A program made the position numbers and the translations under genes. 64,000 bases of DNA, taken from the sequence record NC_048821.1; one strand, written 5' to 3'. The notes under the pieces are model-generated. The model searched no databases. It saw only the letters and a list, made by a program, of their open reading frames with translations, and had not been told where the DNA came from. Positions 25,610-60,057 of this stretch are shown here, in pieces (position 1 is the stretch's first letter; the number at the start of each line of letters is the position of its first letter).

Positions 25610-27787
25610 TTACCTTGCTAGAGGTCTAACAAACACTTTAGATATATCACCGACTACCGAGTCCGCCACCATACCTGCGATGTTACCCGGAGCCACACTT
25701 TGCTTCCAGGACGTAACCTGAGTGGTCAAACGTCTGGATAACTGACTCCATCGAAGTAATGTGTCTAGGTAATCCGTTCCGGTAATACGTGTCAGGTAAG
25801 AGTTATAAGGACCAACGTCGGTCAACATACGTGATACTGCCGCTGCCGGGTTAGTTAAAGAGTTTAATAACCCAGAAGTACGTGAGATTGGAAGACTGAT
25901 GTATTTTTCCATGTCGACGAAAGTTAATTCGACGGTAATGTTCAAACACTTACGGTCTTTAGTCCAACCACCTACACCATCGCCAAAACGTATGGTTGCT
26001 GATTCTACCATACCTGTGCGTATAACTTGTCGTCCTTTAGAAAACACCTTACATAGGAATGGTGAAGTCTGAGCAGACGCACCCGCCGAGTTAGGGAAGA
26101 TCAAAGGTAACAGCATCGCAAACGGAGCCCACATGGTCGTTACCTGCGAATACAAAGAAGCGTAAGTCGATTTGAATTCGAACTTGTACGTTTCTCGGTG
26201 CAGGTTAGCTGAAGATTCACTCCAGTGTTCCGGTATATTAATGTGAGCGTTGTTTGTTAACGCTAAGGGGATGTTAACAATTGCCGCGGAACTCGCAACA
26301 CCGGCAATAGCGTCACGTGCCATGTTCATCACACCGTCAATAGGCGCTATGCCTGTTTGAGCATCCGCCATATCAAAACGGAAATCGTTCACTGACTTCA
26401 CAGCAGAGTTGAACTTGGATGCCATCGGTGACTGAGTAGTGGTGTTGGTGATGCTATCCGACACTGCACCTTGGTGATCGTGACGGAAGGTGATCGCATC
26501 AAAGCCACCATAGAGGGAGGTTTCCAGTAGATCTACTACGTCTCCCATCCAGCTACGGTCTTGGGTGTTGTCTTCGTAAGTAGCTTGTTGTTCGAAACCC
26601 TGATAGATGTTAGGCGTCGTTCCTGTAGACGGTGGACGATTTGAATCACCTGGGTGAGCGGGAGCTTGTCCACTTACCGAGTTGTTGGAAGATGGCGCTA
26701 CACCACCTTGGTTATTCTCATTACCGTATAACCCGGGTAAAGTACCTCCGCCTCCGGAACTGTACGACGTATTTGGCGTGGGTCTCGCATTTTCATACGC
26801 GTCTTTATCCAAGTAAGCTGAGTGTTTCTCCGGTGTATGTGGTTCTTCACTGCCATCGCCTCGAATCTTACCTACTGTATTTAACTCCTTATCCAGAAAT
26901 TGTTGTAAAGTGGTGTCGTAAGTTCCACCATCTCCAGGTCGAAAGTCTTTCATCTTTTGCTCGATGGCTTCAAATTTTTCGTCCGGAGAGTTGATCGCCG
27001 CATCGTCCAGTTTCTTTACTTCTTTCACAAAGTGTCTGAACTTTCTCACTCCTCGAGTCATCATCCGGGCTAAGTCGATAGTGCCGTCTTCATTTACTAC
27101 ATCGCCGAAGGTTTTAGAAAGTCTCGCAACTTCCTCTTGATATTCAGTTTTGTAAGAAGGGTCGATACCATTAACTGGGGATGTATCATCATACTTCATA
27201 GGAAGTACAGGTTTGATTGCACCCAAAGCCACCATGATGTCATTCAATACGTTGTTAGCGGACTGTAGATATAATCCGACCGCTGGTTTAACGTAATAGA
27301 ACTGGTTCTTAGGGGTGTTGGTTAACCAGTACAAAAACTGCATCCCGATAGAAACCAGCTGGATAGACGCGAAAGCAATCGTACCAACGGCTTGACCCAC
27401 ATAAAACATAAACCCCGGGGTTCGGCCTTTGTTAGCCATTACAGCAGCCACAGGATCAAACATGTTTGTGATAAATGTCAGTAGTCCAGTAAACTCAGCA
27501 ACCCCCGGAGTAATGGTAACTAAGGAAGCGTTCTCATCGAAGACTCGCTTATACTGGGTTCCCATCCCGCCTTCCTTCGATTCCATAAACTGAGTGAAAC
27601 GAGGGTCGGTAGCCGGAGAAAACTGAGGTAGGGGGTTTACATAACGATTGTCTCCCGGAGCTGAAGAAAAGAAGTTGTAATAGAGATCTTTATTGAGGTG
27701 ATCTCGGACGGTGACGTTTTCCACACCTGCCGCCATCAGTCGGAACGACTTCTTAATGAGGTCGCGGTCCGTGACTGTAACACTCAT
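25610..27787 (-). CDS. Tail tip/baseplate hub-like protein (phiKZ gp182-like)
   Basis: GDNRYVNPLPQFSPATDP, SPFLCKVFSKGR...GMVES; directly downstream of the tape-measure-like gene. Confidence 0.65.
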   Translation of the reverse strand: MSVTVTDRDLIKKSFRLMAAGVENVTVRDHLNKDLYYNFFSSAPGDNRYVNPLPQFSPATDPRFTQFMESKEGGMGTQYKRVFDENASLVTITPGVAEFTGLLTFITNMFDPVAAVMANKGRTPGFMFYVGQAVGTIAFASIQLVSIGMQFLYWLTNTPKNQFYYVKPAVGLYLQSANNVLNDIMVALGAIKPVLPMKYDDTSPVNGIDPSYKTEYQEEVARLSKTFGDVVNEDGTIDLARMMTRGVRKFRHFVKEVKKLDDAAINSPDEKFEAIEQKMKDFRPGDGGTYDTTLQQFLDKELNTVGKIRGDGSEEPHTPEKHSAYLDKDAYENARPTPNTSYSSGGGGTLPGLYGNENNQGGVAPSSNNSVSGQAPAHPGDSNRPPSTGTTPNIYQGFEQQATYEDNTQDRSWMGDVVDLLETSLYGGFDAITFRHDHQGAVSDSITNTTTQSPMASKFNSAVKSVNDFRFDMADAQTGIAPIDGVMNMARDAIAGVASSAAIVNIPLALTNNAHINIPEHWSESSANLHRETYKFEFKSTYASLYSQVTTMWAPFAMLLPLIFPNSAGASAQTSPFLCKVFSKGRQVIRTGMVESATIRFGDGVGGWTKDRKCLNITVELTFVDMEKYISLPISRTSGLLNSLTNPAAAVSRMLTDVGPYNSYLTRITGTDYLDTLLRWSQLSRRLTTQVTSWKQSVAPGNIAGMVADSVVGDISKVFVRPLAR

Positions 27788-27831
27788 GTTTGAGTCTCCT
27801 TAGAAATTTAGGGGGACGAATCCCCCTTACG

Positions 27832-30800
27832 TTAGGTTAATGATACAGAATCCTGTCGTACCCGGTTGGCTTTTTGATTACCTTCTTGGATAGCGTTGAG
27901 TATTCCCTGTAGGATTGCCGTTTGGCTAGTTAAAGCAGCTTCCGTCTCTGGTTTCATTGCCGCCTCTACTTTAAGTGGTTCTTGTGGAACCTCTTTGACT
28001 TTGGAACGCACTTGAGCTTCTATCGCTTCTTTAGCGATGTTGTACTCGTCGACCTTAGGTTTAGTAGGGGTAGGAACGTTACTTAGATCAGGAATCGATT
28101 TATCGTTAAACACTGAAGGATTACGGGACTGTTTAACTGCACTCGTTGCTGCCGCGGTGTTGTCTTCAAGAGACGGCGTCGCGGAAGGTTTGGTTGCCGT
28201 TAAAGCTCGTTCTTCCTTCGCCAACGAATCTTTAGGGAGCGCTGAAGCTAGAGCATTGCCCCGGGTGAATTTGTTGTCGACTAAAACTCCGTTCTTGTAT
28301 TGCTTTGATTTTTCTGCAATACGCTGTCCAACCCGATCTTCCATCTCGGACTTAGTCATGTGATTATCGACATAGTCGTTGATGTGTTTCTCGGTTTCGG
28401 ACATTCCCGGGGCTGAGTCGTAAGGTGTATTCTCTTCTTCTGACGGAGCTAGGTCTTTGGTGAGTTCACCGTTCAACAAATTATTCAGGTAATCGTTGTA
28501 CAGGCGTTCACGCTTACCCATTCCCGGCAACGCTTTACCACCGTTCAACCCACGAGCCGCAAAGCTAAAGTCACCGTGTTCTTTGATGGACTGCATTTGT
28601 GGTGAGTTTTCAAAGAACCAAATAGCGGTCTTAGCCATGGTCTCAGGATCTTCAGACACCATACGAGGGTTATTGACAATGTCGATACCCAAATCACTAG
28701 CAGCACGTTCGTAGTTATCTTTACCCGTTAATTGAACCAATCCACGACCACGATACAACCAGCCATCGTTAGGGGAATCCGTATTACCCAACCAGCCATT
28801 ATAAACAGCGTTGGCGAATGCAACGGGGCCTTGTCGGATGATCTCTTGGATCTGTGGAATATTAAACTGCTTCAACTTACGGAAGATGTTACGAGCTCTA
28901 GCCGCGTTTGTGTAACGCATGTTTTCTGCGGTATTGCGGTACCCACCAGTTTCGTAGTCAGTAAGTGCCAGCATCTCGGCAATCTGTCTTGGGTCGTCGT
29001 AACCTTTCTTGACCATCTCACGAATAAGAACCTTTGTGATCTGATCTTTGTTTAAGGACACACCTTTATCATCACCCGGTTTAAGCTTAACGTCAGTTTC
29101 GATATCTCGATTAACGTCAACTTTCACCTTACTTAGATCACTAGTCATCTCAGGAACAGGACTTGGTTGTTTACGACCAAATTGTTCTGAAATGTCTGGA
29201 GCGTTCTTAGGTTTATTAATGTTCAGGTTGTCTGGCAAACGATAGACAGACTGATCAGTACGATCTGGTGCTTTAACAGTACGACTCTGCTCTAAGTCAG
29301 GGTCTTTCAGTCTAGCTTGATTCGCTTTGACTTCCAGTGCTTGGAGCATGCGTTTCACACGAGTTGACATTCCTTCGGAACGTTCACCCTCAAATGGTGC
29401 TTCATCAACACTAAACAATCCTTTCACACGCTCATCAACAAAGACCTTAAGTTCCACAACCTGTTGAGCAAAACGGAACTGTGCAGTTGCTGATAACGTA
29501 CGCCACACTTTAGATGGATCGCCACCACGTTGGTTACGACACACTTGGTGCCAAGCTAACCAGACCGGTAAGAAACGATACTGGAACCAACGGATGGCTA
29601 GTTCTCTACCTTTTCTGGAAGTAACACGGAAAGCAGCACTGAAGGTTGCCCAGAATTCTTCCACTGTCCCGGTAAACTCAGAACGACCATTGGAGTAAGA
29701 AGTATAACGTTCCATCCAGCGCTCTAACTTAAGTACCGCTTCTACACGCCAAGGCATGTTGTCTTCGTTACCGTAAGCTGCTAAACGGAAAGCTGTAATG
29801 ATTTCAACCGGCTTATCCCCAGGGAGCATGTCAGAGATGTCAATCCCTTTAATGACTTCTGGTTGTTTAAACCAAGTATCTAACTTCTTCTGTTTCTCTT
29901 CATCGTTGTGATCACCGGTCAATCTCATCCAAGCACTTTCCAACATCCCTGCTTTCTCTACTTTCTTGATCTTAGAGTTAACGGTGTCGATGGTAAGGTC
30001 TTCCGACAGTTTCTTGGAATTAAGATTTGTGGTGTCGTATTCTTCCTTCATTTCATTTAAGTAACGAGCCACTTGTGCTTTGGTCTCTTCTGCACTCAAT
30101 GCGTACGTATCACGACTAATCCATAATTGGATTCGGTAAGGAGATGGGTTCATCATCCCTGCCTCATCGTGGGTTTGCTTAGCGATCAAAGGAACCGTGT
30201 TGTTCTTAAGCTTATCGTAATCCTCAAACTTATTAATATCCAGTTTTTGGAATTGAGCGTAGTAAGACAAATACACTGGTTTAAAACGGAGACTAAACCA
30301 CTGTAGTGTGTCTTGTTGACCTTGCTGCGTCTTGCGGTTATTCAGGAACGGTGTTATAAAGCGTTCTAACGGCGTTTCTCTAGAGAACCCTGCGTTACTA
30401 CCGGATAACTGAACATAGTCCTGTAGCTGCGTTTCTAGGCGTAATACATCATTGATCAGTTCTTCATCTTGATCATCTATACCGTACTGAGCCATACGAA
30501 GTTTTTGCTGGATAGTGAGATCATCAGAACTGAAGAACTTGTACGCCGCGTAACCCGCAAGTCCGACACCTGCCACACCCAAGGTGATCGGGTTTAACAA
30601 GAACGGTGCGGCGGCTGCTGCGATCCCTCCTAGAGAAGTTCCCGCCATCCCTGCGACCGCTGAACCTGTCGCTAACCAGCCTGCTGCTTCTAAACCCACA
30701 GAACCGTAGTCCAGGAGTTTATCTGCGGTAGAACCTTGTTCTACGTCAAAGCCATCACGAGCCGCATCGATAGCCATGTCACCGCCAAGCATCAGTGCGC

Positions 30801-33800
30801 CACCTAAACCAAACTTCGTCATGTTACTCATACGACCAAGTTTAGAGAAGCGACCAAATCTACCTCGCTTACCACGTTTACCTCGGCGACCGTCGCCGTC
30901 GGCACCACCGATACCATCAACGACAGCATCTTTAGTCCTACGCCCCAATAACGCACTGCTTAACAACTTACCTAAACTGAACAAACCTTTAGTGATCGTC
31001 CCGTTAAGTTTCATTAAGTTGGTGAACCCACCAATGCCAAGAGAAAGGAATTTCTTCATCAAAGCAAAGAGGCCACCACCAGCCATTCCGAGCAGTTTAC
31101 CTAAAATACCACCGTCTTGTTTCTTCTTACCGTCTTTATCATCCGGGTTAAGACTTTCGGCAATATCAATGACAGAGTCTTGGAACTGAGCTTGCTTGGC
31201 TTCTTTCTTACGACGGATTTTGTCAGCAAGAGAGTTCAAACGAATACCTTCAGTTGGTTTCTCGTCTTCATGTTCCCCCGTTCCTAAATCGTCAATGAAA
31301 GACTTCACTTTAGGACTGACTTTCTCCATCCCCGGCATCTTGGTATCAAGACCCCAATGACCAGCAATGAGACCGTAGATAGAATCAAGTCGATGAGTAA
31401 TAGGTTCATAACGATCACCGCCGATGTTACCCGCACGTTCGATGACGTGTTCGGAACCTAGGATAGCTGAACCTAGACGCTCCCTACCGTTTTCTTGTAA
31501 CCACTTAGCACCCTTACTCACCATTTTACCGAACGTACCAGTTGCACTTCTGGCTTTACCCAGTGACACACCACCGATGGTTTGAAGGTCGTTAAGGTCC
31601 TCAACAGAAACCAGTAAGTTTCCTTCCTGATCATAAACAGGACCTAAGATGTCACGCCATCCTAGGATCTCATTACCTTCCTCATCAAAGTACCAGCCGT
31701 TCTTGAATCCTCGACTTGTAAGTACAGGGTCTGGGTCACCTTTACGGTAAACATCCATTTGATCCAATCCGGTCTTGGCTTTATCAATTAATGACTTGGC
31801 CTTTCCTACTGGGTCGATTGCTTGGAACGTCTTACTGACAAATGATTTGAAACGATGTAAACCGTCTAGGATGATCTCTCTACCGTCAGGACCGAATAAT
31901 CGACCTGCCAGTCGTTTCCCACTGGCTGCGATCTCTGAAGCCCCTTGGGAGACGTCTATAACGGTACCTTTGATATCGGCCCAAGACTTGATCACTTTAC
32001 GAGACGCTTGGTCGTAATAATCACCCGCGTTTTTCTTAGCAGCGTATAGGACTTCGTTTCCGTCTTCGTCGTAAAGGTCTTCATCTTCAGCAGGGCTTGA
32101 CCCGGCATTACCTAACTTACTTAATTGACCATAAGCGGTTGCTACCGCCGCACCACCTGCTAACAGAGCTGCCGCTTTAGGGTTACTCATGGCTGTGACG
32201 CCAAGTCCACCTAACAGACCACCCAGTACCATCGGTTTATTGGCGATCAAAGCTTCCACGCCTTGGTTAAACAAGTCCGCTGGAACTACGGAACGTAAAC
32301 GTTCTAATAACGATTGTTTTTCTCGTTCTTCGACACGTTGCTGGTCAGTGATTTCCTTGGATGGTTGGTCTTCATCAATCCCCACCGTAGAAACGGATTT
32401 CAATTTCTTCAATAAAGAGATCTGTTCCATTTGGTACTGACTGATTTCAGCCAAGGTGGAGTTAGTCCCCTTTACCAAGTCTAACAACGGATCCATAACT
32501 AGCGCTTTTGTAGGATCTGCGTTTACCCCGATGGCGGGTAATGTTTTGGTGTTGTTTTGAATTTTAACTAAGGTGTCGATGATATTGCTGAGAGCACCAC
32601 TAACTTCTTCCTGCAAAGGGAGGGGGGAAGGAATAGATAAGTTAGATAGATTAGGAGATGACTTATTATTTCTTTTATGAAATATCTGATATAGATCATC
32701 TTTAGTAGGATAAGGTTCATCACTACCAATGGATAAGTCTTCGTTAATAGGGTTGCCGTTAATACGGTTGTTGAGTTGTTTCCAAATCAATTCCTGATTA
32801 ACGATCTCTTTATTAGAATCAGGATCAACACTAATAAACCCAGACGCCTTTAATCCCTCATCTAAACCAAGGCTACGAACCAAATCTATTTTGTCAGCAA
32901 TATTTGGTGTGTAGTTCTTTAATGAATCGGTACGAAGCGATAAACGATGCAATAGCTCTTGCCCTTCTGGGGTAGGGGCTGTTAAACGAGCCATAAGTCC
33001 GTCTAATGTGCTATCTTGAGTGCGTTCGATCATTTCATCAGTGATACTAAAACGACGTCTTACAAGTGCTTCTATCTCAGCAGCTTGTTCCTCGTTCATG
33101 TATTCGTCCGTTCCAATACCGATGTAATCGTAAGGGTTGAAGACGTTCCCCTTATCAGCTTCTCTTGCAAGTCGTTGTGCTAACGCATTACTTGCACTCT
33201 CGCTCAGTTCATTGTCCTTATCGATATCCCCCGCTATCGACTTAGCTGCATCCGCGTAAGTATTCAATTCCCATTCGGGGGTGATCATACGCTGAATCTG
33301 TTGATTTAAACGATCTGTAGTAGTGACCCTTGAGGTACGGTAATCGTAACGCAGTCTAGGAACATCATCTGACCCTGTGCGAATTTTCTCGATAGAGTGA
33401 TGGATTTCACTAAGCAGTGCAGGGATTTCTTCAGTCAAACTACGGGAGTCATGAACCGACCACACCGAGTTGTTCTTAAGGTCTTTAAGAGACTTCTCTT
33501 TAATCTGGTAAACGCTACCTTGGGACTCTTGGTAGTTTTCACCAACTAAGTTGAAGGCACCCCCTGCCGCACCTGTGGCTTTACGAACCGCTTGCCATAA
33601 TAACTTAGGCATTGGTTTAGCATTAGGTGGTAGTTCTTCTAGGTACTCCTCATAAGTCATGTGAGGTTGATCCATCATACCAGTTTCCTGATAATGACGA
33701 CCCATGACCGAACCCATGGCCTTAGTTGAGTACGACAACAAATCACCGAACTGACGGAGTTCCTTTTGAGTTTTGTCAAAAAGCTTAGCTTGATCTGGAT

Positions 33801-34902
33801 ACTTAGCACGCACCTTAGCGATCAAGTCACGACCTGCTTTTGTTTCAAAGAACTCTGGACCTCTGTCCACGACGAATTGCCCAAGCATCGAACCAATTAT
33901 CTCACCCGGAGAAACACCAGCGTCAGCGGACATCTCAGAGGCAAAACGTACATCCCCGACTAACTGAGTCATGATCGATAAAGAATCGTTAACACCATCT
34001 TTACTGATGATATTACCTAGGGCTTCACCAAACCCACCCGCTCTCGAGAACGTCGACTTCAAGATGTTGTCACGTAATCGACCTTTACTAGCTTGCAATA
34101 CAGAGGTCTTTTCGAAATCAGACATTGCAGTGTTTTTAACAACGTCTTTGATTTCTTTAATAATGCGGTGCTGAGAAGCTTCCATGAATTTGTAATACTT
34201 AGCATTAGTTAAGTATTGACGAGTCATCAAGTTTAACTTCATCGCTTCACGTTGACCATGGACCTTCATTTGGTATTGGTACAAACGCTGTAGGTTAGCA
34301 TTAACTTCAAACAGTTGTTCGTTGTTCTGTAACCCTGCCGACAATTGCTTAGAGCCAACACTACTCATCACTCGAGTAATAGCATCCGTGGATTCAACGT
34401 TTACTACGGATTGTTGTTCTAATGCTTCTAGCATGCGCTGTTGAGTGTCTTCTTCGACATCCCCCATGCGGAGTTGTTCTTCTCGGAACTCTCCGGTCTT
34501 TTCCCAATCACTAAAGTCTTTTTTACTGAACTCTTCGAGTCCGTCGACGATTTTATTGGGTAGACGATCGCGCAATGACTCGCTTAAAGAACCTGAAAGA
34601 AAAGCCAGATCTCCCATGAGGTCGACACTATTTTCTTTAAACTCTTTAAATGCTTCTTGTTTCTTACGATCCAGTTCGCGGTAGAAGTCAAAGGTTGTAC
34701 CAAACGAACTAGGAAGGATACGTCTTAATGTTTTAATTTTTGTGTCGGTATCACCGACAGTATTAGATTTTAGGGCAGAGAGAAATCCTTTGGAGACAGA
34801 CTTTAAGAACCCTTGATCTTTATTCCCGTCAAAATCAAAGTCAAAATCCATATCTCCATCAAGGAAATCATCTCCCCAATCATAATCTGATTCACTTGCC
34901 AT
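27832..34902 (-). CDS. Tape-measure-like tail protein with C-terminal GH19 lysozyme domain (phiKZ gp181 position)
   Basis: 2356 aa, hydrophobic Gly/Ala segments; ETGG..ENMRY..GWLYRGRGLVQLTGKDNY GH19 signature. Confidence 0.8.
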   Translation of the reverse strand: MASESDYDWGDDFLDGDMDFDFDFDGNKDQGFLKSVSKGFLSALKSNTVGDTDTKIKTLRRILPSSFGTTFDFYRELDRKKQEAFKEFKENSVDLMGDLAFLSGSLSESLRDRLPNKIVDGLEEFSKKDFSDWEKTGEFREEQLRMGDVEEDTQQRMLEALEQQSVVNVESTDAITRVMSSVGSKQLSAGLQNNEQLFEVNANLQRLYQYQMKVHGQREAMKLNLMTRQYLTNAKYYKFMEASQHRIIKEIKDVVKNTAMSDFEKTSVLQASKGRLRDNILKSTFSRAGGFGEALGNIISKDGVNDSLSIMTQLVGDVRFASEMSADAGVSPGEIIGSMLGQFVVDRGPEFFETKAGRDLIAKVRAKYPDQAKLFDKTQKELRQFGDLLSYSTKAMGSVMGRHYQETGMMDQPHMTYEEYLEELPPNAKPMPKLLWQAVRKATGAAGGAFNLVGENYQESQGSVYQIKEKSLKDLKNNSVWSVHDSRSLTEEIPALLSEIHHSIEKIRTGSDDVPRLRYDYRTSRVTTTDRLNQQIQRMITPEWELNTYADAAKSIAGDIDKDNELSESASNALAQRLAREADKGNVFNPYDYIGIGTDEYMNEEQAAEIEALVRRRFSITDEMIERTQDSTLDGLMARLTAPTPEGQELLHRLSLRTDSLKNYTPNIADKIDLVRSLGLDEGLKASGFISVDPDSNKEIVNQELIWKQLNNRINGNPINEDLSIGSDEPYPTKDDLYQIFHKRNNKSSPNLSNLSIPSPLPLQEEVSGALSNIIDTLVKIQNNTKTLPAIGVNADPTKALVMDPLLDLVKGTNSTLAEISQYQMEQISLLKKLKSVSTVGIDEDQPSKEITDQQRVEEREKQSLLERLRSVVPADLFNQGVEALIANKPMVLGGLLGGLGVTAMSNPKAAALLAGGAAVATAYGQLSKLGNAGSSPAEDEDLYDEDGNEVLYAAKKNAGDYYDQASRKVIKSWADIKGTVIDVSQGASEIAASGKRLAGRLFGPDGREIILDGLHRFKSFVSKTFQAIDPVGKAKSLIDKAKTGLDQMDVYRKGDPDPVLTSRGFKNGWYFDEEGNEILGWRDILGPVYDQEGNLLVSVEDLNDLQTIGGVSLGKARSATGTFGKMVSKGAKWLQENGRERLGSAILGSEHVIERAGNIGGDRYEPITHRLDSIYGLIAGHWGLDTKMPGMEKVSPKVKSFIDDLGTGEHEDEKPTEGIRLNSLADKIRRKKEAKQAQFQDSVIDIAESLNPDDKDGKKKQDGGILGKLLGMAGGGLFALMKKFLSLGIGGFTNLMKLNGTITKGLFSLGKLLSSALLGRRTKDAVVDGIGGADGDGRRGKRGKRGRFGRFSKLGRMSNMTKFGLGGALMLGGDMAIDAARDGFDVEQGSTADKLLDYGSVGLEAAGWLATGSAVAGMAGTSLGGIAAAAAPFLLNPITLGVAGVGLAGYAAYKFFSSDDLTIQQKLRMAQYGIDDQDEELINDVLRLETQLQDYVQLSGSNAGFSRETPLERFITPFLNNRKTQQGQQDTLQWFSLRFKPVYLSYYAQFQKLDINKFEDYDKLKNNTVPLIAKQTHDEAGMMNPSPYRIQLWISRDTYALSAEETKAQVARYLNEMKEEYDTTNLNSKKLSEDLTIDTVNSKIKKVEKAGMLESAWMRLTGDHNDEEKQKKLDTWFKQPEVIKGIDISDMLPGDKPVEIITAFRLAAYGNEDNMPWRVEAVLKLERWMERYTSYSNGRSEFTGTVEEFWATFSAAFRVTSRKGRELAIRWFQYRFLPVWLAWHQVCRNQRGGDPSKVWRTLSATAQFRFAQQVVELKVFVDERVKGLFSVDEAPFEGERSEGMSTRVKRMLQALEVKANQARLKDPDLEQSRTVKAPDRTDQSVYRLPDNLNINKPKNAPDISEQFGRKQPSPVPEMTSDLSKVKVDVNRDIETDVKLKPGDDKGVSLNKDQITKVLIREMVKKGYDDPRQIAEMLALTDYETGGYRNTAENMRYTNAARARNIFRKLKQFNIPQIQEIIRQGPVAFANAVYNGWLGNTDSPNDGWLYRGRGLVQLTGKDNYERAASDLGIDIVNNPRMVSEDPETMAKTAIWFFENSPQMQSIKEHGDFSFAARGLNGGKALPGMGKRERLYNDYLNNLLNGELTKDLAPSEEENTPYDSAPGMSETEKHINDYVDNHMTKSEMEDRVGQRIAEKSKQYKNGVLVDNKFTRGNALASALPKDSLAKEERALTATKPSATPSLEDNTAAATSAVKQSRNPSVFNDKSIPDLSNVPTPTKPKVDEYNIAKEAIEAQVRSKVKEVPQEPLKVEAAMKPETEAALTSQTAILQGILNAIQEGNQKANRVRQDSVSLT

Positions 34903-34923
34903 TTTGAAACCTCATGGTGTATT

Positions 34924-51522: not shown

Positions 51523-51601
51523 TAATTAAAAAGGCTGATGTAGGGAGGTGGGTTATCCACCTCCCGTTCTTTTACACTTTATTTTTTTACTAAATATTAT
51601 T

Positions 51602-53357: not shown

Positions 53358-53370
53358 TTGATTAAATCAG

Positions 53371-53400
53371 GTGGGTCCTTCGGGACCCACTCCTTTTTTG
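53371..53400 (+). terminator. Intrinsic terminator
   Basis: GTGGGTCC-TTCG-GGACCCAC then T-tract. Confidence 0.85.
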
Positions 53401-53429: not shown

Positions 53430-53879
53430 ATGCAAACTGAACCAAATAAGTTTGAATCAGAAAAGATTCGTTATCAAAGAAACAAAAAGTCAATTCTGGA
53501 ACGCTGCGATGTTTCATGTCGGGAGGTCATCCAGTCATTAAACCAATGTTGTTATCTGGGGACAAGATACTGCTGTGAGGGACATGAGACTAACGACAAT
53601 GTAGTTTATTCCATCCAAATGGTTTACCGTAATGAAGCATTTGAAAAACTTATTATGTTGTATCACCTGCTCACTGATGCTTTTGACGAACCCAATGTCG
53701 TTGAAATGAAGTTTGCAAGAAAAAGAACAACAGTCAGCAACAATAATGCCCTGCACGTAGTTACCTTCTTTGTACGTCGTGATACTTACAAGAAACCTAG
53801 CGCTGATGAAGTCTCTCAAATTTTCATGAATTGGATTGAGACTTACCGTGTTAGCGAACCGACTCATTTCTATTCATGA
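53430..53879 (+). CDS. Hypothetical protein with TRYCCEGH motif (149 aa)
   Basis: ORF with AAGGA SD. Confidence 0.7.
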   Translation: MQTEPNKFESEKIRYQRNKKSILERCDVSCREVIQSLNQCCYLGTRYCCEGHETNDNVVYSIQMVYRNEAFEKLIMLYHLLTDAFDEPNVVEMKFARKRTTVSNNNALHVVTFFVRRDTYKKPSADEVSQIFMNWIETYRVSEPTHFYS

Positions 53880-53885
53880 GGTTAA

Positions 53886-54524
53886 ATGATGAAAAATTTC
53901 TACATGCAAATAAACGACGACAACTTCCGTGTTCAGTTTACTTCCGACCGAGACAGTTATTGGACTTGCGAAACCAGAGGTGGGAAACCCGTCTGGAGAG
54001 ATAAGCTGAAATATCATCCGGAAGAAGGTGAACCCGAACGGGTGATGTTCGGTAGTCGACTGCTGTACGATAACGTTATGGATTTGTCATGTAACGACAT
54101 GCTAGATGCTGCCAAAGTTTTTGGTCTCGATGAATTGAAACCGGGCACTTACAAGATCCGACCTCCTGGTTGTTATTTCTACGAGGTAGGTTTAACTTAT
54201 TGGTATGGCATTACTGAATCGGGCCGAGTCATAGCAGTGACGCTATCTAAATCTAACTTGACCATTGAAGAATATGATAAAGAAGGGAACTACTTTATCG
54301 ACCCGGATAATGAAGGCACGCGTGTGGCTGAAGCGGTTGGGATTTTCTCTGCCGAGGAAACGCTACTTTGGGTGATGATGGTCGTCATGCGACCTGAGGT
54401 ACCTAAGATGTTAAAAAGTTATTATCGTCCTGACGACACTATATCTATCCATACGGTAAATTACAGTGAAGGTCTGATCGAGGAATGGGTCGGTAAATTT
54501 GAAAAAGCATTGGAGGAATTGTAA
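53886..54524 (+). CDS. Degenerate Ntn-hydrolase-like subunit A1
   Basis: Paralogue of 55235..55879; shares DML...FGL...PGTY with the Thr1 proteins. Confidence 0.6.
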   Translation: MMKNFYMQINDDNFRVQFTSDRDSYWTCETRGGKPVWRDKLKYHPEEGEPERVMFGSRLLYDNVMDLSCNDMLDAAKVFGLDELKPGTYKIRPPGCYFYEVGLTYWYGITESGRVIAVTLSKSNLTIEEYDKEGNYFIDPDNEGTRVAEAVGIFSAEETLLWVMMVVMRPEVPKMLKSYYRPDDTISIHTVNYSEGLIEEWVGKFEKALEEL

Positions 54525-55231
54525 TGACCATCGTCGTTTTCCATAAAGGTACTTTCATGGCCGATTCATTAAGTCGTCACGGTGCCGAATTAGAAGCAGA
54601 ACATCGAGGTCGAGAGGCTTCCAAATCACATCTTAAGATTTATCCGGTTCCTGAAGACGTGCCTAAGTTTGATGACGGAAGCGGTACGTTAAAGACTCCG
54701 GACTTCATGGGTTCAGCTGGATCGACTTTCGCTATTCGGGTGACTACACTTTTTTTAAGTGACTTGTTGACTCCGTTCGGACTAACTAATTTCGTTCCCG
54801 GAACTTATAACTTACAAACCTGCAATTTACAAGTAAACACTAATCGTGTTGCATGGTTTTTATTCCGGGTAGGTGAACAATGTTTCCGGGTTGAATACGA
54901 AGGGAACAAACTCATCATCGGTGAATTAAAAGACGCCGACATCATTGGGAGTGCCAAGGGTTCATATAACTTTTTATTGAAAGTGTTGTATGACACCTTT
55001 AATCCTCCGCTTAATAAGAAGTTTGTTGCGTTGAACTTTTTGTTGTTGTCGGGCATCGACGAAACCATTGGTGGTGATCTTTGGGTGGTAAACAAAGGTG
55101 AAAGAGAAATTACCGCGTCATCTCCCAAACTTAGTGATAAAGTTAAAAAGAAACTGGTCAAGGATTATCGTGAGAATTTGTACAAAAAAGCTAATCTCAC
55201 TTTACCTGTTGAAGAAAAGAAAGAGGATTAA
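54524..55231 (+). CDS. Proteasome-beta/HslV-like Ntn hydrolase B1
   Basis: (M)TIVV..G.FMADS...LKI...GSAG...IGSA...DETIGG. Confidence 0.7.
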   Translation: MTIVVFHKGTFMADSLSRHGAELEAEHRGREASKSHLKIYPVPEDVPKFDDGSGTLKTPDFMGSAGSTFAIRVTTLFLSDLLTPFGLTNFVPGTYNLQTCNLQVNTNRVAWFLFRVGEQCFRVEYEGNKLIIGELKDADIIGSAKGSYNFLLKVLYDTFNPPLNKKFVALNFLLLSGIDETIGGDLWVVNKGEREITASSPKLSDKVKKKLVKDYRENLYKKANLTLPVEEKKED

Positions 55232-55234
55232 ACA

Positions 55235-55879
55235 ATGTCCATAATCAGTGTAGACAGAAGCGGGTTCATGGTTACCGCCGTTACTGAGCGCGGTCCCTTT
55301 TGGTGCATGACGACTTCCGCTAGTCGCCCTGTCTGGAGCAAAGACTTCCCTATTGAACGTGAGGAAGGCGTACCAGAACATGTGATTTATGGTGCGGCTT
55401 ACGACGATGGTGAAGGGAAAGATTTTTCTTCTAATGAATTTTACGACATCATGTGGTTGTATCAAGTTGAAAAGTTAGAGGAAGGGACGTATCCACTCCG
55501 TCACCCACTTATGGTGCACAGTAAGATGGGAGAGCATCGCTGGGCTGGTTTAACTAACAAAGGTACTTTAGTTACCTTAAAACTTAACGACAGAAATTTG
55601 GAGATTAAGTTTTACGATGTTAGCGACGGTGGCAGTTATCTCATTGACAATGACCAAGAGAAAGGTCTTCCGATCGCAAGCGAAGTTGTTGGGGTTATAG
55701 ACGGTCCCGAAAGTTTGCAATGGGGGATGTTAGCTAGCCTCAGAAAGGACACCCCTAAGTTAGCCAAGGTGTTTTCTACTGATCGAGACATAAGTGTTGT
55801 AATGTCCATGAATCCAAAACCTGAAACATTAGATAGTTGGGTGACTGCTCTGGATGAAAAGCTAGGAGAATTAGTATGA
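55235..55879 (+). CDS. Degenerate Ntn-hydrolase-like subunit A2
   Basis: Paralogue of A1 (W...RPVW...EEG.PE.V..G). Confidence 0.6.
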   Translation: MSIISVDRSGFMVTAVTERGPFWCMTTSASRPVWSKDFPIEREEGVPEHVIYGAAYDDGEGKDFSSNEFYDIMWLYQVEKLEEGTYPLRHPLMVHSKMGEHRWAGLTNKGTLVTLKLNDRNLEIKFYDVSDGGSYLIDNDQEKGLPIASEVVGVIDGPESLQWGMLASLRKDTPKLAKVFSTDRDISVVMSMNPKPETLDSWVTALDEKLGELV

Positions 55880-56592
55880 CTTTAGTTGTTGGATTTTTAG
55901 GTGACATGATGGCTGATTCTAAGGCGATGAGCTGCGCCGAAGAGTTAGAACGTCGTCCTCGGGTTGCCACGCATGATCATCTTAAGATCATGCCCGCACC
56001 TAACTTGACCCCTCCTTATGTTGATGAAGAAGGAACAGAGCATGTTCCAGACTTTATGGGAGTGGCAGGGAACACTAATGCAGTAGAGATGCTTAAGTTA
56101 GACCCCACGGATATGTTAGGTTTGTTTGGTTTGGAGAAATTCATTCCTGGTGAATACAACATGTCTTTGATCAATTTTAACATGGATACTGACATCTCTT
56201 TAAAAGTCATGTTCCGTGTTGGTGAGAAATTCTTTACCGTGGGATTTGACGGTTCTTCTTTGGAGATCTCTAAATTAACCAACTATGTTTCTATGGGTAG
56301 TGGTGCTGGACCTTTCCGCGTCCTAACTAAGATGCTCTTTGATGACAAGGGGGTGACAGGTCAAGATCTCGCGACTACCTTTAAACTACTCATGTTATCA
56401 GGTGCGGATGTAACCGTAGGAGGAAAATTCCAATTCCTGTTATCCGGAAAGGATAACGTTTTTAGCGAGACACCTAAGATCACTCAAGAAGACCGAGAGA
56501 AATTAGTAAAGCGTTACAAAGAGACGCTTTACAAACTAAGCGGTCACGAACTCCCTAAAGAAGCGGAAGAGGAAAAGATTGAGAAGGAGTAG
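55876..56592 (+). CDS. Proteasome-beta/HslV-like Ntn hydrolase B2
   Basis: (M)TLVV..GDMMADS...LKI...GVAG...MGSGA...DVTVGG. Confidence 0.75.
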   Translation: MTLVVGFLGDMMADSKAMSCAEELERRPRVATHDHLKIMPAPNLTPPYVDEEGTEHVPDFMGVAGNTNAVEMLKLDPTDMLGLFGLEKFIPGEYNMSLINFNMDTDISLKVMFRVGEKFFTVGFDGSSLEISKLTNYVSMGSGAGPFRVLTKMLFDDKGVTGQDLATTFKLLMLSGADVTVGGKFQFLLSGKDNVFSETPKITQEDREKLVKRYKETLYKLSGHELPKEAEEEKIEKE

Positions 56593-56595
56593 GGT

Positions 56596-57165
56596 ATGAA
56601 GGAAAACACCATCAAGTTGGTGTTACTGGACGTGATCAAAGCTTACCACTCATACCTTGGAAACGAGGTATGGGAGGAAACCCTATTGAAAGCCAACAAT
56701 GGGGATTGCATCTGGATAGCTCAACTTACGGCGTATGTGCTCAGACATGCGTTTGATTTTTCGATAGACATACAGAGTTCCCCTCACCATACATTCTTAG
56801 TGTATGACGGAAAGGTTTACGATTCTCTTAACTTTAACGGCGGAGATGTATTCAGTCTCCCCTTTTACGGAGTATCAAGTAAATGTCGAAAGGAAGTTTC
56901 TCCTCTGGATTACTTTCATTTGGAACCTTGGGATGAAGATATCTATTCGGTAATTCACCATGTATGTAATCATTATGGAATAATCCCCATGGGGAACGTG
57001 GGGTATGATTTTGGGAATCCTAAACCCATCGCTATTATTAGTAGTGCGGAAGAACAAAATCGTTTAGAGATTATGGACATTGATGTTGAGTATCGAATTT
57101 CAGCTGGATACGAGACGGAACATGTGCATGTTGTTGAAGTTAAAGATAATAACCTAGGTAATTAA
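56596..57165 (+). CDS. Transglutaminase/papain-like Cys-His-Asp domain protein
   Basis: NNGDC...HHTF..YDGKVYD. Confidence 0.6.
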   Translation: MKENTIKLVLLDVIKAYHSYLGNEVWEETLLKANNGDCIWIAQLTAYVLRHAFDFSIDIQSSPHHTFLVYDGKVYDSLNFNGGDVFSLPFYGVSSKCRKEVSPLDYFHLEPWDEDIYSVIHHVCNHYGIIPMGNVGYDFGNPKPIAIISSAEEQNRLEIMDIDVEYRISAGYETEHVHVVEVKDNNLGN

Positions 57166-57167
57166 GA

Positions 57168-57560
57168 ATGTTGTTCACAGTCGGTGCGTTAATTAAAAAT
57201 GCGGAAGGTAAACTATTGATCCAAAATCATAAAAAGATTGGTGGGTTAACCATCCCTAGTGGTAAATTGGATGATAACGAACGTGACGTGGTTGGACTGA
57301 CCCGAGAATTGAAAGAGGAATTGGGCGTAACAACCCTTTGGGTTGGTAAGCGTTTAGGTAAGTGGCGACAGACCTACGAGGGTTTAGGTGTTGTCGATCA
57401 AGCTCTATACGAAGTGGTGTTAAACGAAGAACCTCGAAACATGGAACCAAACAAACACACTTCCCAAACTTGGATGTCCATTGAGGAGATCAAATCAAGT
57501 GGGGAGAAACTCAGCGGATATTTAACTAAAGTTTTAGAACTGGAGAAAACAAATGAGTAA
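57168..57560 (+). CDS. Nudix hydrolase
   Basis: Nudix box GKLDDNERDVVGLTRELKEELG. Confidence 0.9.
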   Translation: MLFTVGALIKNAEGKLLIQNHKKIGGLTIPSGKLDDNERDVVGLTRELKEELGVTTLWVGKRLGKWRQTYEGLGVVDQALYEVVLNEEPRNMEPNKHTSQTWMSIEEIKSSGEKLSGYLTKVLELEKTNE

Positions 57561-58815
57561 ACAAATTAAAGAATTAATGTACCAACTGGTCGATTCATTC
57601 TCGATTATTGCTAACCTTAAACACCATAAAGCGGTTCAGTATTTGAACAGCGGGCATTGTTACGCGGTGGCGACGTTAGCACAACACATCTTAAAAGAGA
57701 AATATGACATCACAGTGAACTTGAAGTCTCACCCACATCATAGTTTCTTTGAATATGACGGTGTCTACTACGATACTTTGTTTCCGGTAGGTTATCCACT
57801 ACACCCTTCTGAGGTGTGGCGTATGGAAGAGGCTCGGTGTCGTAAGACTTTAGATGACTGGGCGTTTGGAGAGTGCATGATGGTTAACCCAGACCCAACT
57901 ATCATCGCTTGGGTGGAGTACGTTACGGAAAGACTCGGAATCAGTCAACCTAAGTTTTACTGGGAGATGATAGAAACTTTCGAAGATCGTTCTACTTATG
58001 ATAAGAAAGCAACTCGTAAAGTCTACCATCACAAACTAGGCAAGTACCGTCGTAAGGTTAAACGTTACCGTCTCCGAGCATGGAAGTTCCGTAACGTAGA
58101 ATGGAAAACGTTCATGATTGGTTGGATGGCGGAGTTTACCCCTTATCCGGAAGATCTTTGGGTGGATTTAGAAGTCATTGAATACGATAAGTGGGTGAAG
58201 AAAGTAATCTCTACCGTTTACCCTCCTTACGAAGAAGTGATGGAGAAGTGTTTTGGTGACGATGTCTTTGACTCCCCTAATGTTCAAGCGATGGGTCGAT
58301 TAAGTGACATCTGTACAGGTGGTGAAGTGGGGTTTAAGCGGGACAACCTTTGGGGTGTATGTGCCAGCACTGGTCTCGAGTTAAGTGCTTCTATGGAAGT
58401 GAAGTCTCCTGTGGGACCCCTAGAGGTTTCGGAGGAAGTGGATAAAATACTGGAAGACGCAGCACAGCACTTGAATGAGAAACACCAACAGTCTAGTTTC
58501 CCTCGTGGTTGTTCTGCTAACGTCAAAATGTACGATGATGCTTGTTATCAACATTACATGAATGCACGGTCTGAAGCCCCAGGTCTTTTGAACTTGACAT
58601 GTCATCACTGGAAGGTAATCGACGAGGCTTGCAAAAGAATAAAGGACGGGGAAGTCTTTGATCCTAAAAGAGTGCTTACATTAGGTTCACCTGATAAACT
58701 AGAAGATGATCCTAAACGTGTACTCTTTGCCGTCGAAGATAACGAGGGTAAAGTGAGCTACACGAGTGATCGAGAAGCGTGGTTAAATAGGGACTCCGGT
58801 GACTGCGAGGAATAA
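57553..58815 (+). CDS. Multidomain protein with N-terminal Cys-His-Asp domain (420 aa)
   Basis: NSGHC...HHSF..YDGVYYD, paralogous to 56596..57165. Confidence 0.6.
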   Translation: MSKQIKELMYQLVDSFSIIANLKHHKAVQYLNSGHCYAVATLAQHILKEKYDITVNLKSHPHHSFFEYDGVYYDTLFPVGYPLHPSEVWRMEEARCRKTLDDWAFGECMMVNPDPTIIAWVEYVTERLGISQPKFYWEMIETFEDRSTYDKKATRKVYHHKLGKYRRKVKRYRLRAWKFRNVEWKTFMIGWMAEFTPYPEDLWVDLEVIEYDKWVKKVISTVYPPYEEVMEKCFGDDVFDSPNVQAMGRLSDICTGGEVGFKRDNLWGVCASTGLELSASMEVKSPVGPLEVSEEVDKILEDAAQHLNEKHQQSSFPRGCSANVKMYDDACYQHYMNARSEAPGLLNLTCHHWKVIDEACKRIKDGEVFDPKRVLTLGSPDKLEDDPKRVLFAVEDNEGKVSYTSDREAWLNRDSGDCEE

Positions 58816-59793: not shown

Positions 59794-60057
59794 ATGGACT
59801 TTCTAAAAGAAAAAGCTACTGTCAATGAACTTCGTGTAATCAAAGCTGTCACTGGTCTAGCTATCGGTGGTGTTTCAATCGCGATGAATGAAGAACTTCC
59901 AGTAGGCAAGCTTGCTTGTACCGCAGCAGGTACTACGATGGCAGTCATGAATACTTCAGAAAGAGACACTCGTCGTCTAGGTGCTCGTGAAAATGCTATC
60001 TGGGAAACTGTAGGTAGTGTTGCGCTTGTTAGTATCGTCGGAAGCCTATTCTCATAA
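59794..60057 (+). CDS. Small hydrophobic membrane protein (87 aa)
   Basis: Three Gly/Ala-rich hydrophobic segments; AAGGA SD. Confidence 0.65.
   Translation: MDFLKEKATVNELRVIKAVTGLAIGGVSIAMNEELPVGKLACTAAGTTMAVMNTSERDTRRLGARENAIWETVGSVALVSIVGSLFS

Follow-up and report, generated by a model that had tools for sequence, protein, structure and literature searches.

Among the N-terminal nucleophile (Ntn) hydrolases of the proteasome fold, the 20S proteasome (MEROPS T1A, PF00227) pairs an active subunit with a homologous inactive subunit in stacked heptameric hetero-rings, whereas HslV (ClpQ), which starts with Met-Thr and exposes its threonine by removal of the methionine, is a homo-dodecamer encoded by a single gene. 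HslV, Anbu and BPH are homo-oligomers, and several proteasome homologues look incompatible with ring formation (PMC8665760). Fuchs, Alva and Lupas added 22 proteasome-like families in 2021, of which several (PPH, AAH, CPH, PMI-4 and DAH) occur in phages; the new families have no propeptide, no AAA+ partner and no informative gene context or co-occurrence, and none of those in their table is listed as phage-only (PMC8665760). PPH proteins have a length of about 140 amino acids, lack helix H2 and cluster with BPH and HslV, and connectase carries a specificity insertion at the S3/S4 site (PMC8665760). Here, a module of four adjacent genes, A1, B1, A2 and B2, located within a 64,000-nucleotide stretch of sequence record NC_048821.1 (in the following termed the window), was analysed and compared with these systems.

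The source of the window was identified as Photobacterium phage PDCC-1 (MN562221, 237.5 kb); the region is 100% identical, and window positions equal record positions minus 124,000. PDCC-1 is classified by NCBI in the genus Aphroditevirus of the Gorgonvirinae within the Chimalliviridae, the nucleus-forming jumbo phages, and in its GenBank record all four genes are annotated as hypothetical. The original prediction, which was made from the sequence without database searches, had proposed that an inactive Ntn protein is paired with an apparently active one of the same fold and that this pair is duplicated, and the proposal was supported by the predicted fold and the residues of B and by the homology of A to B. 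The four genes are two diverged copies of a two-gene module, which consists of B, a probable and very divergent Ntn hydrolase of the proteasome-beta/HslV type, and its dead paralogue A. The reading favoured here, to which we assign a probability of roughly 60%, is that the coupled genes encode a hetero-oligomer of active B and inactive A subunits, reinvented independently of the alpha and beta subunits of the proteasome.

Residues and predicted fold of the B proteins

B1 (54524-55231, plus strand; PHROG 25187) and B2 (55876-56592, plus strand) encode candidate proteasome-beta/HslV-like Ntn proteins of 235 and 238 amino acids, respectively, and the length of the family members ranges from 231 to 262 amino acids. 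The Met-Thr start that had been noticed in B1 and B2 is present in all 17 B proteins compared. The ATG codons of B1 and B2 are located 7 and 6 codons past an in-frame stop codon, respectively, with no other start codon in between, and therefore no propeptide is possible. Host methionine aminopeptidase would be expected to expose the threonine of B as residue 1, in which respect, as well as in the bacterial or phage setting, B would resemble HslV; B is about 60 residues longer.

Conservation was determined across the 17 B proteins, which share down to 23% identity. Met1-Thr2, Lys37, Gly65, Gly92, Gly141-Ser142 and Gly183 are invariant, Gly182 is found in 16 and Gly143 in 15 of the proteins, and position 14 is Asp in all but one, where it is Glu. 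The Thr, Asp/Glu, Lys, Gly and Gly-Ser residues of B stand in the order of the proteasome, and B appears to keep counterparts of Asp17, Lys33, Gly47 and the Gly-Ser129-Gly loop. In B1 the residues concerned are encoded on the plus strand at 54527-54529 (Thr2), 54563-54565 (Asp14), 54635-54637 (Lys38), 54716-54721 (Ala65-Gly66), 54947-54955 (Gly142-Ser143-Ala144) and 55070-55075 (Gly183-Gly184), and in B2, likewise on the plus strand, at 55879-55881 (Thr2), 55915-55917 (Asp14), 55984-55986 (Lys37), 56065-56070 (Ala64-Gly65), 56296-56304 (Gly141-Ser142-Gly143), 56407-56409 (Asp178) and 56419-56424 (Gly182-Gly183). When aligned with Escherichia coli HslV by hhalign, the B residues are in register with T1, D17, K33, AG(G) and GSG, in an alignment that is not significant.

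For B2, a structural model was built with AlphaFold2 from a 10-sequence alignment (predicted local distance difference test, pLDDT, 73; predicted template modelling score, pTM, 0.73). Its elements are predicted to follow the order S1-S2...H1-H2-S-S-S-S-H3-H4-S-S-H5, as in a proteasome beta subunit, and they end with a C-terminal helix resembling H5. A Foldseek search, one of the checks suggested with the original prediction, matched the model to 20S proteasome chains: 167 PDB hits were obtained at E<=1e-3 (best 1.8e-5), and the 50 best of these 167 are all alpha or beta chains of the 20S proteasome, with a Foldseek probability of 1.00 and template modelling (TM) scores of 0.40-0.49. The 20S proteasome thus provides the best structural matches of B and shares with it the order of Thr1, Asp/Glu17, Lys33, Gly47 and Gly-Ser129-Gly as well as the H5-like helix; unlike it, B has no significant sequence match, no propeptide, much shorter H1 and H2 helices and an insertion at S3/S4. 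The insertion around S3/S4, near Lys37, adds about 20 residues, among them conserved prolines; these residues fall in gaps of the HslV alignments and are modelled with a pLDDT below 50. Connectase resembles B in its proteasome-like fold with Thr1 and possibly in its elaboration of S3/S4 near the active site; it differs in being monomeric, archaeal, devoid of H1/H2, which B has in short form, and without an inactive partner. Its helical S3/S4 insertion covers the active site; that of B is poorly modelled.

Against the viral structure database BFVD, the B2 model matched an independent model of the orthologue from phage USC-1 at a TM-score of 0.89. Further matches were a phage protein annotated as HslV and uncharacterised jumbo phage proteins from Noxifer, 201phi2-1 and several Erwinia phages. 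The Noxifer match (E 4.9e-7) is likely to be gp305, a protein of 201 amino acids from a jumbo phage which has PhuZ and phiKZ-type split RNA polymerase genes; gp305 starts with MTTIA and shows the proteasome-like motifs AADS, RKI, SGAG, GTG and D..SGG in this order, and it differs from B in having no detectable sequence similarity to it. Its neighbours gp304 and gp306 gave no profile similarity to gp305, A or B, and hence no evident dead partner at the sequence level in this one phage. The gp305 start overlaps the stop codon of the upstream gp304 gene, which encodes 166 amino acids, by 4 nt (L109, 9053-10155).

On these grounds, B is very probably a proteasome-type Ntn protein. B has the structure and the active site by which the proteasome-like family is defined (PMC8665760), and it is missed by every sequence profile applied. 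It shares with the homologues of Fuchs et al. a divergent proteasome fold, the conserved Thr1, Asp17, Lys33 and Gly47, the occurrence in Caudoviricetes and the lack of a propeptide and of an AAA+ partner, while no coupled inactive paralogue is described in their paper (PMC8665760). Among their families, PPH does not fit on size alone, since B has 231-262 amino acids and an H5 helix. Following the H5-like helix, the B proteins carry low-complexity C-terminal tails (window positions 55200-55231 and 56550-56592; loci L007, L008 and L009), which in Aphroditevirus are acidic (EEKKED, EEEKIEKE); those of pTD1, of VP4B and of a number of metagenomic copies are strongly lysine-rich (KPAKKAKKKSKAK...).

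Coupled genes and the A paralogue

The genes follow each other on the plus strand in the order A1-B1-A2-B2, each A being coupled to its B by the TAATG and ATGA junctions that the original prediction had pointed out. A1 (53886-54524; PHROG 33796) encodes a catalytically dead paralogue of B of 212 amino acids, and its GenBank start at 53889 is located one codon downstream of the start of the open reading frame (ORF). At the A1/B1 junction (54512-54529, plus strand; TTGGAGGAATTGTAATGACCA), a Shine-Dalgarno-like GGAGGA motif within the 3' end of A1 is followed by the TAA stop codon, which abuts the ATG of B1 (TAATG, 54521-54526), and by the Thr codon. After a 3-nt spacer behind B1, A2 (55235-55879, plus strand) encodes 214 amino acids, again a catalytically dead paralogue of B. 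The A2/B2 junction (55864-55881, plus strand; AGCTAGGAGAATTAGTATGACTT) contains a GGAG motif, an ATGA overlap at 55876-55879 formed by the ATG of B2 and the TGA of A2, and the Thr codon. A1 and A2 share 30% identity (E 1e-33), and B1 and B2 share 39% (E 6e-51).

The module is narrowly distributed. In tblastn searches, A and B were found in the same 15 phage records, all of them Vibrio or Photobacterium jumbo phages of the Gorgonvirinae of approximately 236-242 kb. An exhaustive HMMER search with the B profile against 1.84 billion representative proteins yielded 13 clusters only, and the metagenome contigs of the JGI contained no match to the B family. A word-indexed homology search retrieved near-identical orthologues only and missed even the paralogue within the window. 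By PHROGs, B and A were assigned to phrog_25187 and phrog_33796, respectively, both of unknown function, and Pfam, NCBIfam and PADLOC scans of A1, B1, A2 and B2 gave nothing relevant. B did not match phrog_1040 ('peptidase HslV family'), which E. coli HslV matches at 1e-22. The only tblastn matches of E. coli HslV in the phage collection were rejected as phage genes; they are 52-98% identical to E. coli HslV, stem from bacterial genome contigs, short or UNVERIFIED records and look host-derived. Records with such host-like HslV include OR844988, OR849164, OR846616, MT835528 and AGRM01000004.

Eight divergent B proteins on six contigs were additionally examined for their gene context. On all six contigs, a gene encoding 205-215 amino acids is located directly upstream of B with overlapping stop and start codons (partial in L010). 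Taken together, the survey of synteny that had been suggested with the original prediction placed A directly upstream of B, with a stop/start overlap and a GAG/GGAG motif, for all 17 of the B genes compared, which were drawn from 10 genomes or contigs. The order A-B-A-B is present in PDCC-1, USC-1, both TSL-2019 phages, phiKT1019 and three metagenomic contigs, and a single A-B pair in pTD1, VP4B, phiKT1028 and the contigs L009 and L014. Phage Aphrodite1 has no equivalent of window positions 53532-55000, which include all of A1 and the first approximately 160 codons of B1, and retains A2-B2 at 93-94% identity; therefore, the two genes of a pair are gained and lost together, and the phage can dispense with pair 1. 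In the Aphrodite1 record (MG720308; L099, 3672-4869), a B1 C-terminal remnant of 48 amino acids is annotated as a coding sequence, and the intact A2 is unannotated. The usual context consists of the genes for dihydrofolate reductase (DHFR), an HD protein and ThyA, a small ORF, A-B(-A-B), a gene encoding about 190-205 amino acids, a Nudix gene and a large ORF; the A-B module always adjoins thyA and is usually accompanied by the DHFR, HD and Nudix genes. The two-gene A-B module was seen only in Gorgonvirinae-type jumbo phages of Vibrio and Photobacterium. Trees of A and B gave no resolution at depth on a single ancient versus recurrent duplication or on a mirror-tree comparison.

The original prediction had regarded all four proteins as homologous from shared internal motifs. 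In BLASTP comparisons no link between A and B was visible, and hhalign with 10-sequence profiles gave a weak signal (probability 9.5%). The signal became significant only after the divergent members from the exhaustive HMMER search and from their contigs had been added, resulting in 17 diverse sequences per family: the local hhalign alignment then reached a probability of 96.8% (E 2.7e-10) with a score of 71.6, its 206 collinear columns spanning B 1-221 and A 1-213, whereas the reversed alignment and 30 column shuffles gave scores of 9-19 with probabilities of at most 1%. Most of the signal stems from the central segment (B 75-135, A 67-128; score 41.7), where the previously noticed motifs lie (DML..FGL..F.PG.Y and NLxI). 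The N- and C-terminal thirds scored approximately 17 each, above all of their own shuffles, and the three segments sum to the full-length score. Independently, HMMER with the A profile against all ORFs of the window found B2 at 4e-8 and B1 at 5e-6, and no further paralogues were found among these ORFs. The BFVD search with the B2 model also returned a protein of 211 amino acids from phage 2 TSL-2019 (E 5.9e-5), whose length equals the annotated length of the A1 orthologue and which, by organism and length, may be that protein.

As had been noted for Thr1 and GSG, A lacks the catalytic residues. Every catalytic column is lost in the A-B alignment: Thr1 is replaced by S, M, P, F, A or G, Asp mostly takes the place of Ser129, and the columns of Asp17, Lys33 and Gly47 vary. 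The structural glycine, Gly92 in B and Gly84 in A, is invariant in both families, and A keeps the whole length of the fold including the C-terminal helix. The ratio of nonsynonymous to synonymous substitutions of A is 0.05-0.10 (0.08-0.10 for A1; 0.06 against Aphrodite1, where substitutions are not saturated), and that of B is similar. These values show strong purifying selection on A, which appears to be kept functional. A also evolves somewhat faster than B, as judged by the identities of the paralogues (30% vs 39%) and of the pTD1 proteins (25% for A vs 36% for B). No N-terminal extension is present in A, which aligns with B from residue 1, and no signal was obtained for A with HslV profiles in hhalign, B being its only detectable relative. 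Because A has no alpha-like extension, aligns from residue 1 and has B as its sole detectable relative, it is best regarded as a lineage-specific dead copy of B and not as an orthologue of the alpha subunit. The designation 'alpha/beta-type' in the original prediction consequently fails as worded and holds by analogy only: the proteasome alpha subunit has an N-terminal helical extension which A lacks, and A derives from B, not from alpha.

A proposed hetero-oligomer and its alternatives

In the hetero-oligomer proposed here, B would act as a threonine peptidase and A would serve as a non-catalytic scaffold, gating or substrate-binding partner. Since the stop/start overlap occurs everywhere and the pair has been duplicated and lost as a unit, synthesis of A and B in near-equal amounts and their assembly into a hetero-oligomer are considered most likely. 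A1B1 and A2B2 are probably separate isoforms with different specificities, because one pair suffices in related phages. The pairing of an active with a homologous inactive subunit is shared with the 20S proteasome, and it appears to have arisen independently of proteasome alpha and beta. Dead paralogues kept as partners of the active subunit after duplication are also known from the ClpP/ClpR hetero-rings and from the inactive beta subunits of eukaryotes, and by analogy A would be closer to these beta subunits or to ClpR than to an alpha subunit. The fold of ClpP is unrelated, and physical association is established in those systems, whereas for A and B it is inferred.

Several results weigh against this interpretation. 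None of 14 B members matched PF00227 at E<=10, and PDB sequence searches with single sequences and with 10- and 17-sequence profiles gave chance matches only. B versus HslV profiles scored approximately 25 in hhalign (probability 6-8%) against a shuffle maximum of 18-22; the HslV profiles were composed of gammaproteobacterial sequences only (74-99% identity) and then supplemented with four from Firmicutes, and the B-HslV comparison stayed non-significant. The assignment of the B fold rests on one moderate-confidence model, built from only 10 sequences, with modest TM-scores (0.40-0.49) and a root-mean-square deviation of 7-10 Å, and in this model the loops at 17-34 and 98-104 are of low confidence and the helices H1 and H2 are unusually short. 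For A, the AlphaFold2 model of A2 was poor (pLDDT 57) and the fold search with it uninformative. The ordered series of proteasome-beta/HslV motifs listed in the original prediction is conserved across the 17 B proteins except for its last part: the residue equivalent to Asp166, the 'D' of 'D...GG', is acidic (D/E) in only 12 of them. No ATPase family was detected among the scanned adjacent genes, of which those for the HD, ThyA and Nudix proteins and for two weakly YunG-like proteins were recognisable; this supports the earlier statement that no partner ATPase is adjacent, and there is no adjacent unfoldase. Finally, the A-B complex and its stoichiometry are read from gene organisation.

A more far-reaching form of the hetero-oligomer would be a ring-shaped, self-compartmentalising A-B particle of recent independent origin in this phage lineage, the two isoforms of which (A1B1 and A2B2) would differ in substrate specificity and serve to remodel the host or phage proteome. 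This form is put forward tentatively, with the odds somewhat against it.

The alternative that survives best is that B is a small specific enzyme and not a chambered protease, namely a connectase-like transpeptidase or ligase, a site-specific processing peptidase, a deconjugase or a small-molecule amidohydrolase, working as a heterodimer with A or as a monomer with A as its regulator. The approximately 20 extra residues of B are located at the site of the specificity insertion of connectase, and H1 and H2, which make ring contacts in the 20S proteasome, are very short in the B model; several of the homologues of Fuchs et al. look ring-incompatible as well (PMC8665760). Set against this, B retains H3, H4 and the long H5, the elements stabilising the stacking of rings, and its catalytic set is the full proteasome set. 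The lack of an adjacent ATPase would suit a small enzyme. The constant position beside thyA, where DHFR, HD and Nudix genes are usually present too, would suit an amidohydrolase whose substrate is linked to nucleotide metabolism, but these neighbours may simply mark an early or middle gene block, and no small-molecule enzyme of the Thr-Ntn type appeared in the fold search, where the 50 best of 167 matches were all proteasome chains. We consider a small enzyme unlikely.

Less probable still is that B forms a homo-oligomeric HslV-like protease, possibly with a host unfoldase (HslU), for which A would be a chaperone, an inhibitor, a timing regulator or a protein unrelated in function. HslV, Anbu and BPH set a precedent for homo-oligomers (PMC8665760). 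The host genus (P. damselae) encodes its own HslV and presumably HslU too, and A diverges somewhat faster than B. However, HslV is encoded by a single gene, whereas B is always preceded by an obligate-looking inactive partner and has no HslU-type ATPase gene beside it. The strict order of A before B, the overlap in 17 of 17 cases and the joint duplication and loss are what is expected of obligate partners, and A keeps its whole fold length including the C-terminal helix. Furthermore, a conserved interface for HslU is not suggested by the sequence of B, which is not significantly similar to that of HslV.

That B lies outside the proteasome family altogether, with the fold match and the order of the motifs as a coincidence or modelling artefact and A and B as two diverged copies of some structural or regulatory protein peculiar to phages, is very improbable: the lack of a significant sequence-profile link to any Ntn family, the TM-scores below 0.5 and the shallow alignment behind the model would allow it, but they are outweighed by 167 concordant proteasome matches at a Foldseek probability of 1.00, by the agreement of the independent BFVD model, by an invariant Thr2 without a possible propeptide, by K, G and GS, which among proteins of 23-39% identity are invariant and stand where their order in the proteasome predicts, and by the fact that these are exactly the residues lost in A.

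Genomic surroundings and implications

A terminator-like hairpin (53370-53391, plus strand), whose 9-bp stem includes 6 GC pairs and precedes a run of T, is located after thyA and is the likely upstream boundary of a transcription unit which would contain an ORF of 149 amino acids and A1-B1-A2-B2. From this hairpin to position 60000, no plus-strand hairpin of similar strength was found. Overall, 14 terminator-like sites were counted, compared with 6.8 expected from shuffled sequences. The HD-thyA gene pair is bracketed by two strong terminator-like hairpins, that at 53370-53391 and another at 51543-51565 (10-bp stem), both with T runs. Sigma-70 promoter-like sites occur at chance level only, and as the phage has RNA polymerases of its own they are not informative.

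The ORF between thyA and A1 (53430-53879) encodes a Cys-rich protein of 149 amino acids (phrog_7413, unknown function); it recurs at this position in TSL-2019, pTD1 and contig L014 and is absent in contig L015. In the most divergent contig (L009, 2023-3434), a thymidylate synthase gene is located directly after B and is split around a small ORF with a weak match to the DNA-binding domain of I-TevI, which suggests a homing-endonuclease intron.

Downstream of B2, a protein of 189 amino acids (56596-57165) and the N-terminal approximately 100 amino acids of a protein of 420 amino acids (57553-58815) are paralogues (E 1e-11), and the latter protein weakly matches the Pfam family Phage_YunG-like. 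The genes of these YunG-like proteins lie on either side of the Nudix gene, and in most related contigs they are found downstream of A-B. Across eight syntenic copies, N34, G36, C38, A42, H64, H65, G72, D76 and G82 are invariant, and the conserved Cys-His-Asp pattern looks like a papain/transglutaminase-like site. No match to PDB sequences was obtained for the YunG-like proteins, and the link to transglutaminase-like peptidases stays a lead. A possible parallel is offered by bacterial Anbu operons, in which a proteasome homologue occurs together with a transglutaminase-like protein. Elsewhere in the window, positions 26001-32000 show a GC content of 0.46-0.47 compared with about 0.42 and a negative GC skew, and this GC-richer stretch coincides with an ORF of approximately 2,350 codons on the minus strand (27835-34911).

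Searches of the literature returned no description of the Gorgonvirinae A-B pair, nor of a phage proteasome homologue with a coupled inactive partner. The novelty implied in the original prediction holds in part: phage homologues of the proteasome were already described in 2021 (PMC8665760), but what looks new is a very divergent proteasome-like family distinguished by a coupled inactive paralogue and by duplication of the pair as a unit. Phage proteins of the proteasome fold are known but functionally blank, and none had been found with an informative gene context. In the A-B family, an obligate-looking dead paralogue on the same message provides such a clue, and the unit has been duplicated again. 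Families of this kind, which are invisible to Pfam and yielded 13 clusters among 1.84 billion representatives with HMMER, can be placed by structure prediction combined with synteny.

If the proposed hetero-oligomer is correct, a threonine protease would be added to the repertoire of the nucleus-forming jumbo phages. The A-B pair would then represent an independent and young case of a homomeric Ntn protease gaining a non-catalytic partner subunit, the same transition as that behind the alpha/beta proteasomes, in a system small enough for experimental reconstruction. Should the ring-shaped form prove true as well, A-B would represent the first heteromeric machine of the proteasome-like kind in a virus, and nature would have replayed in it the step that led from a homomeric ancestor to the alpha/beta proteasome.

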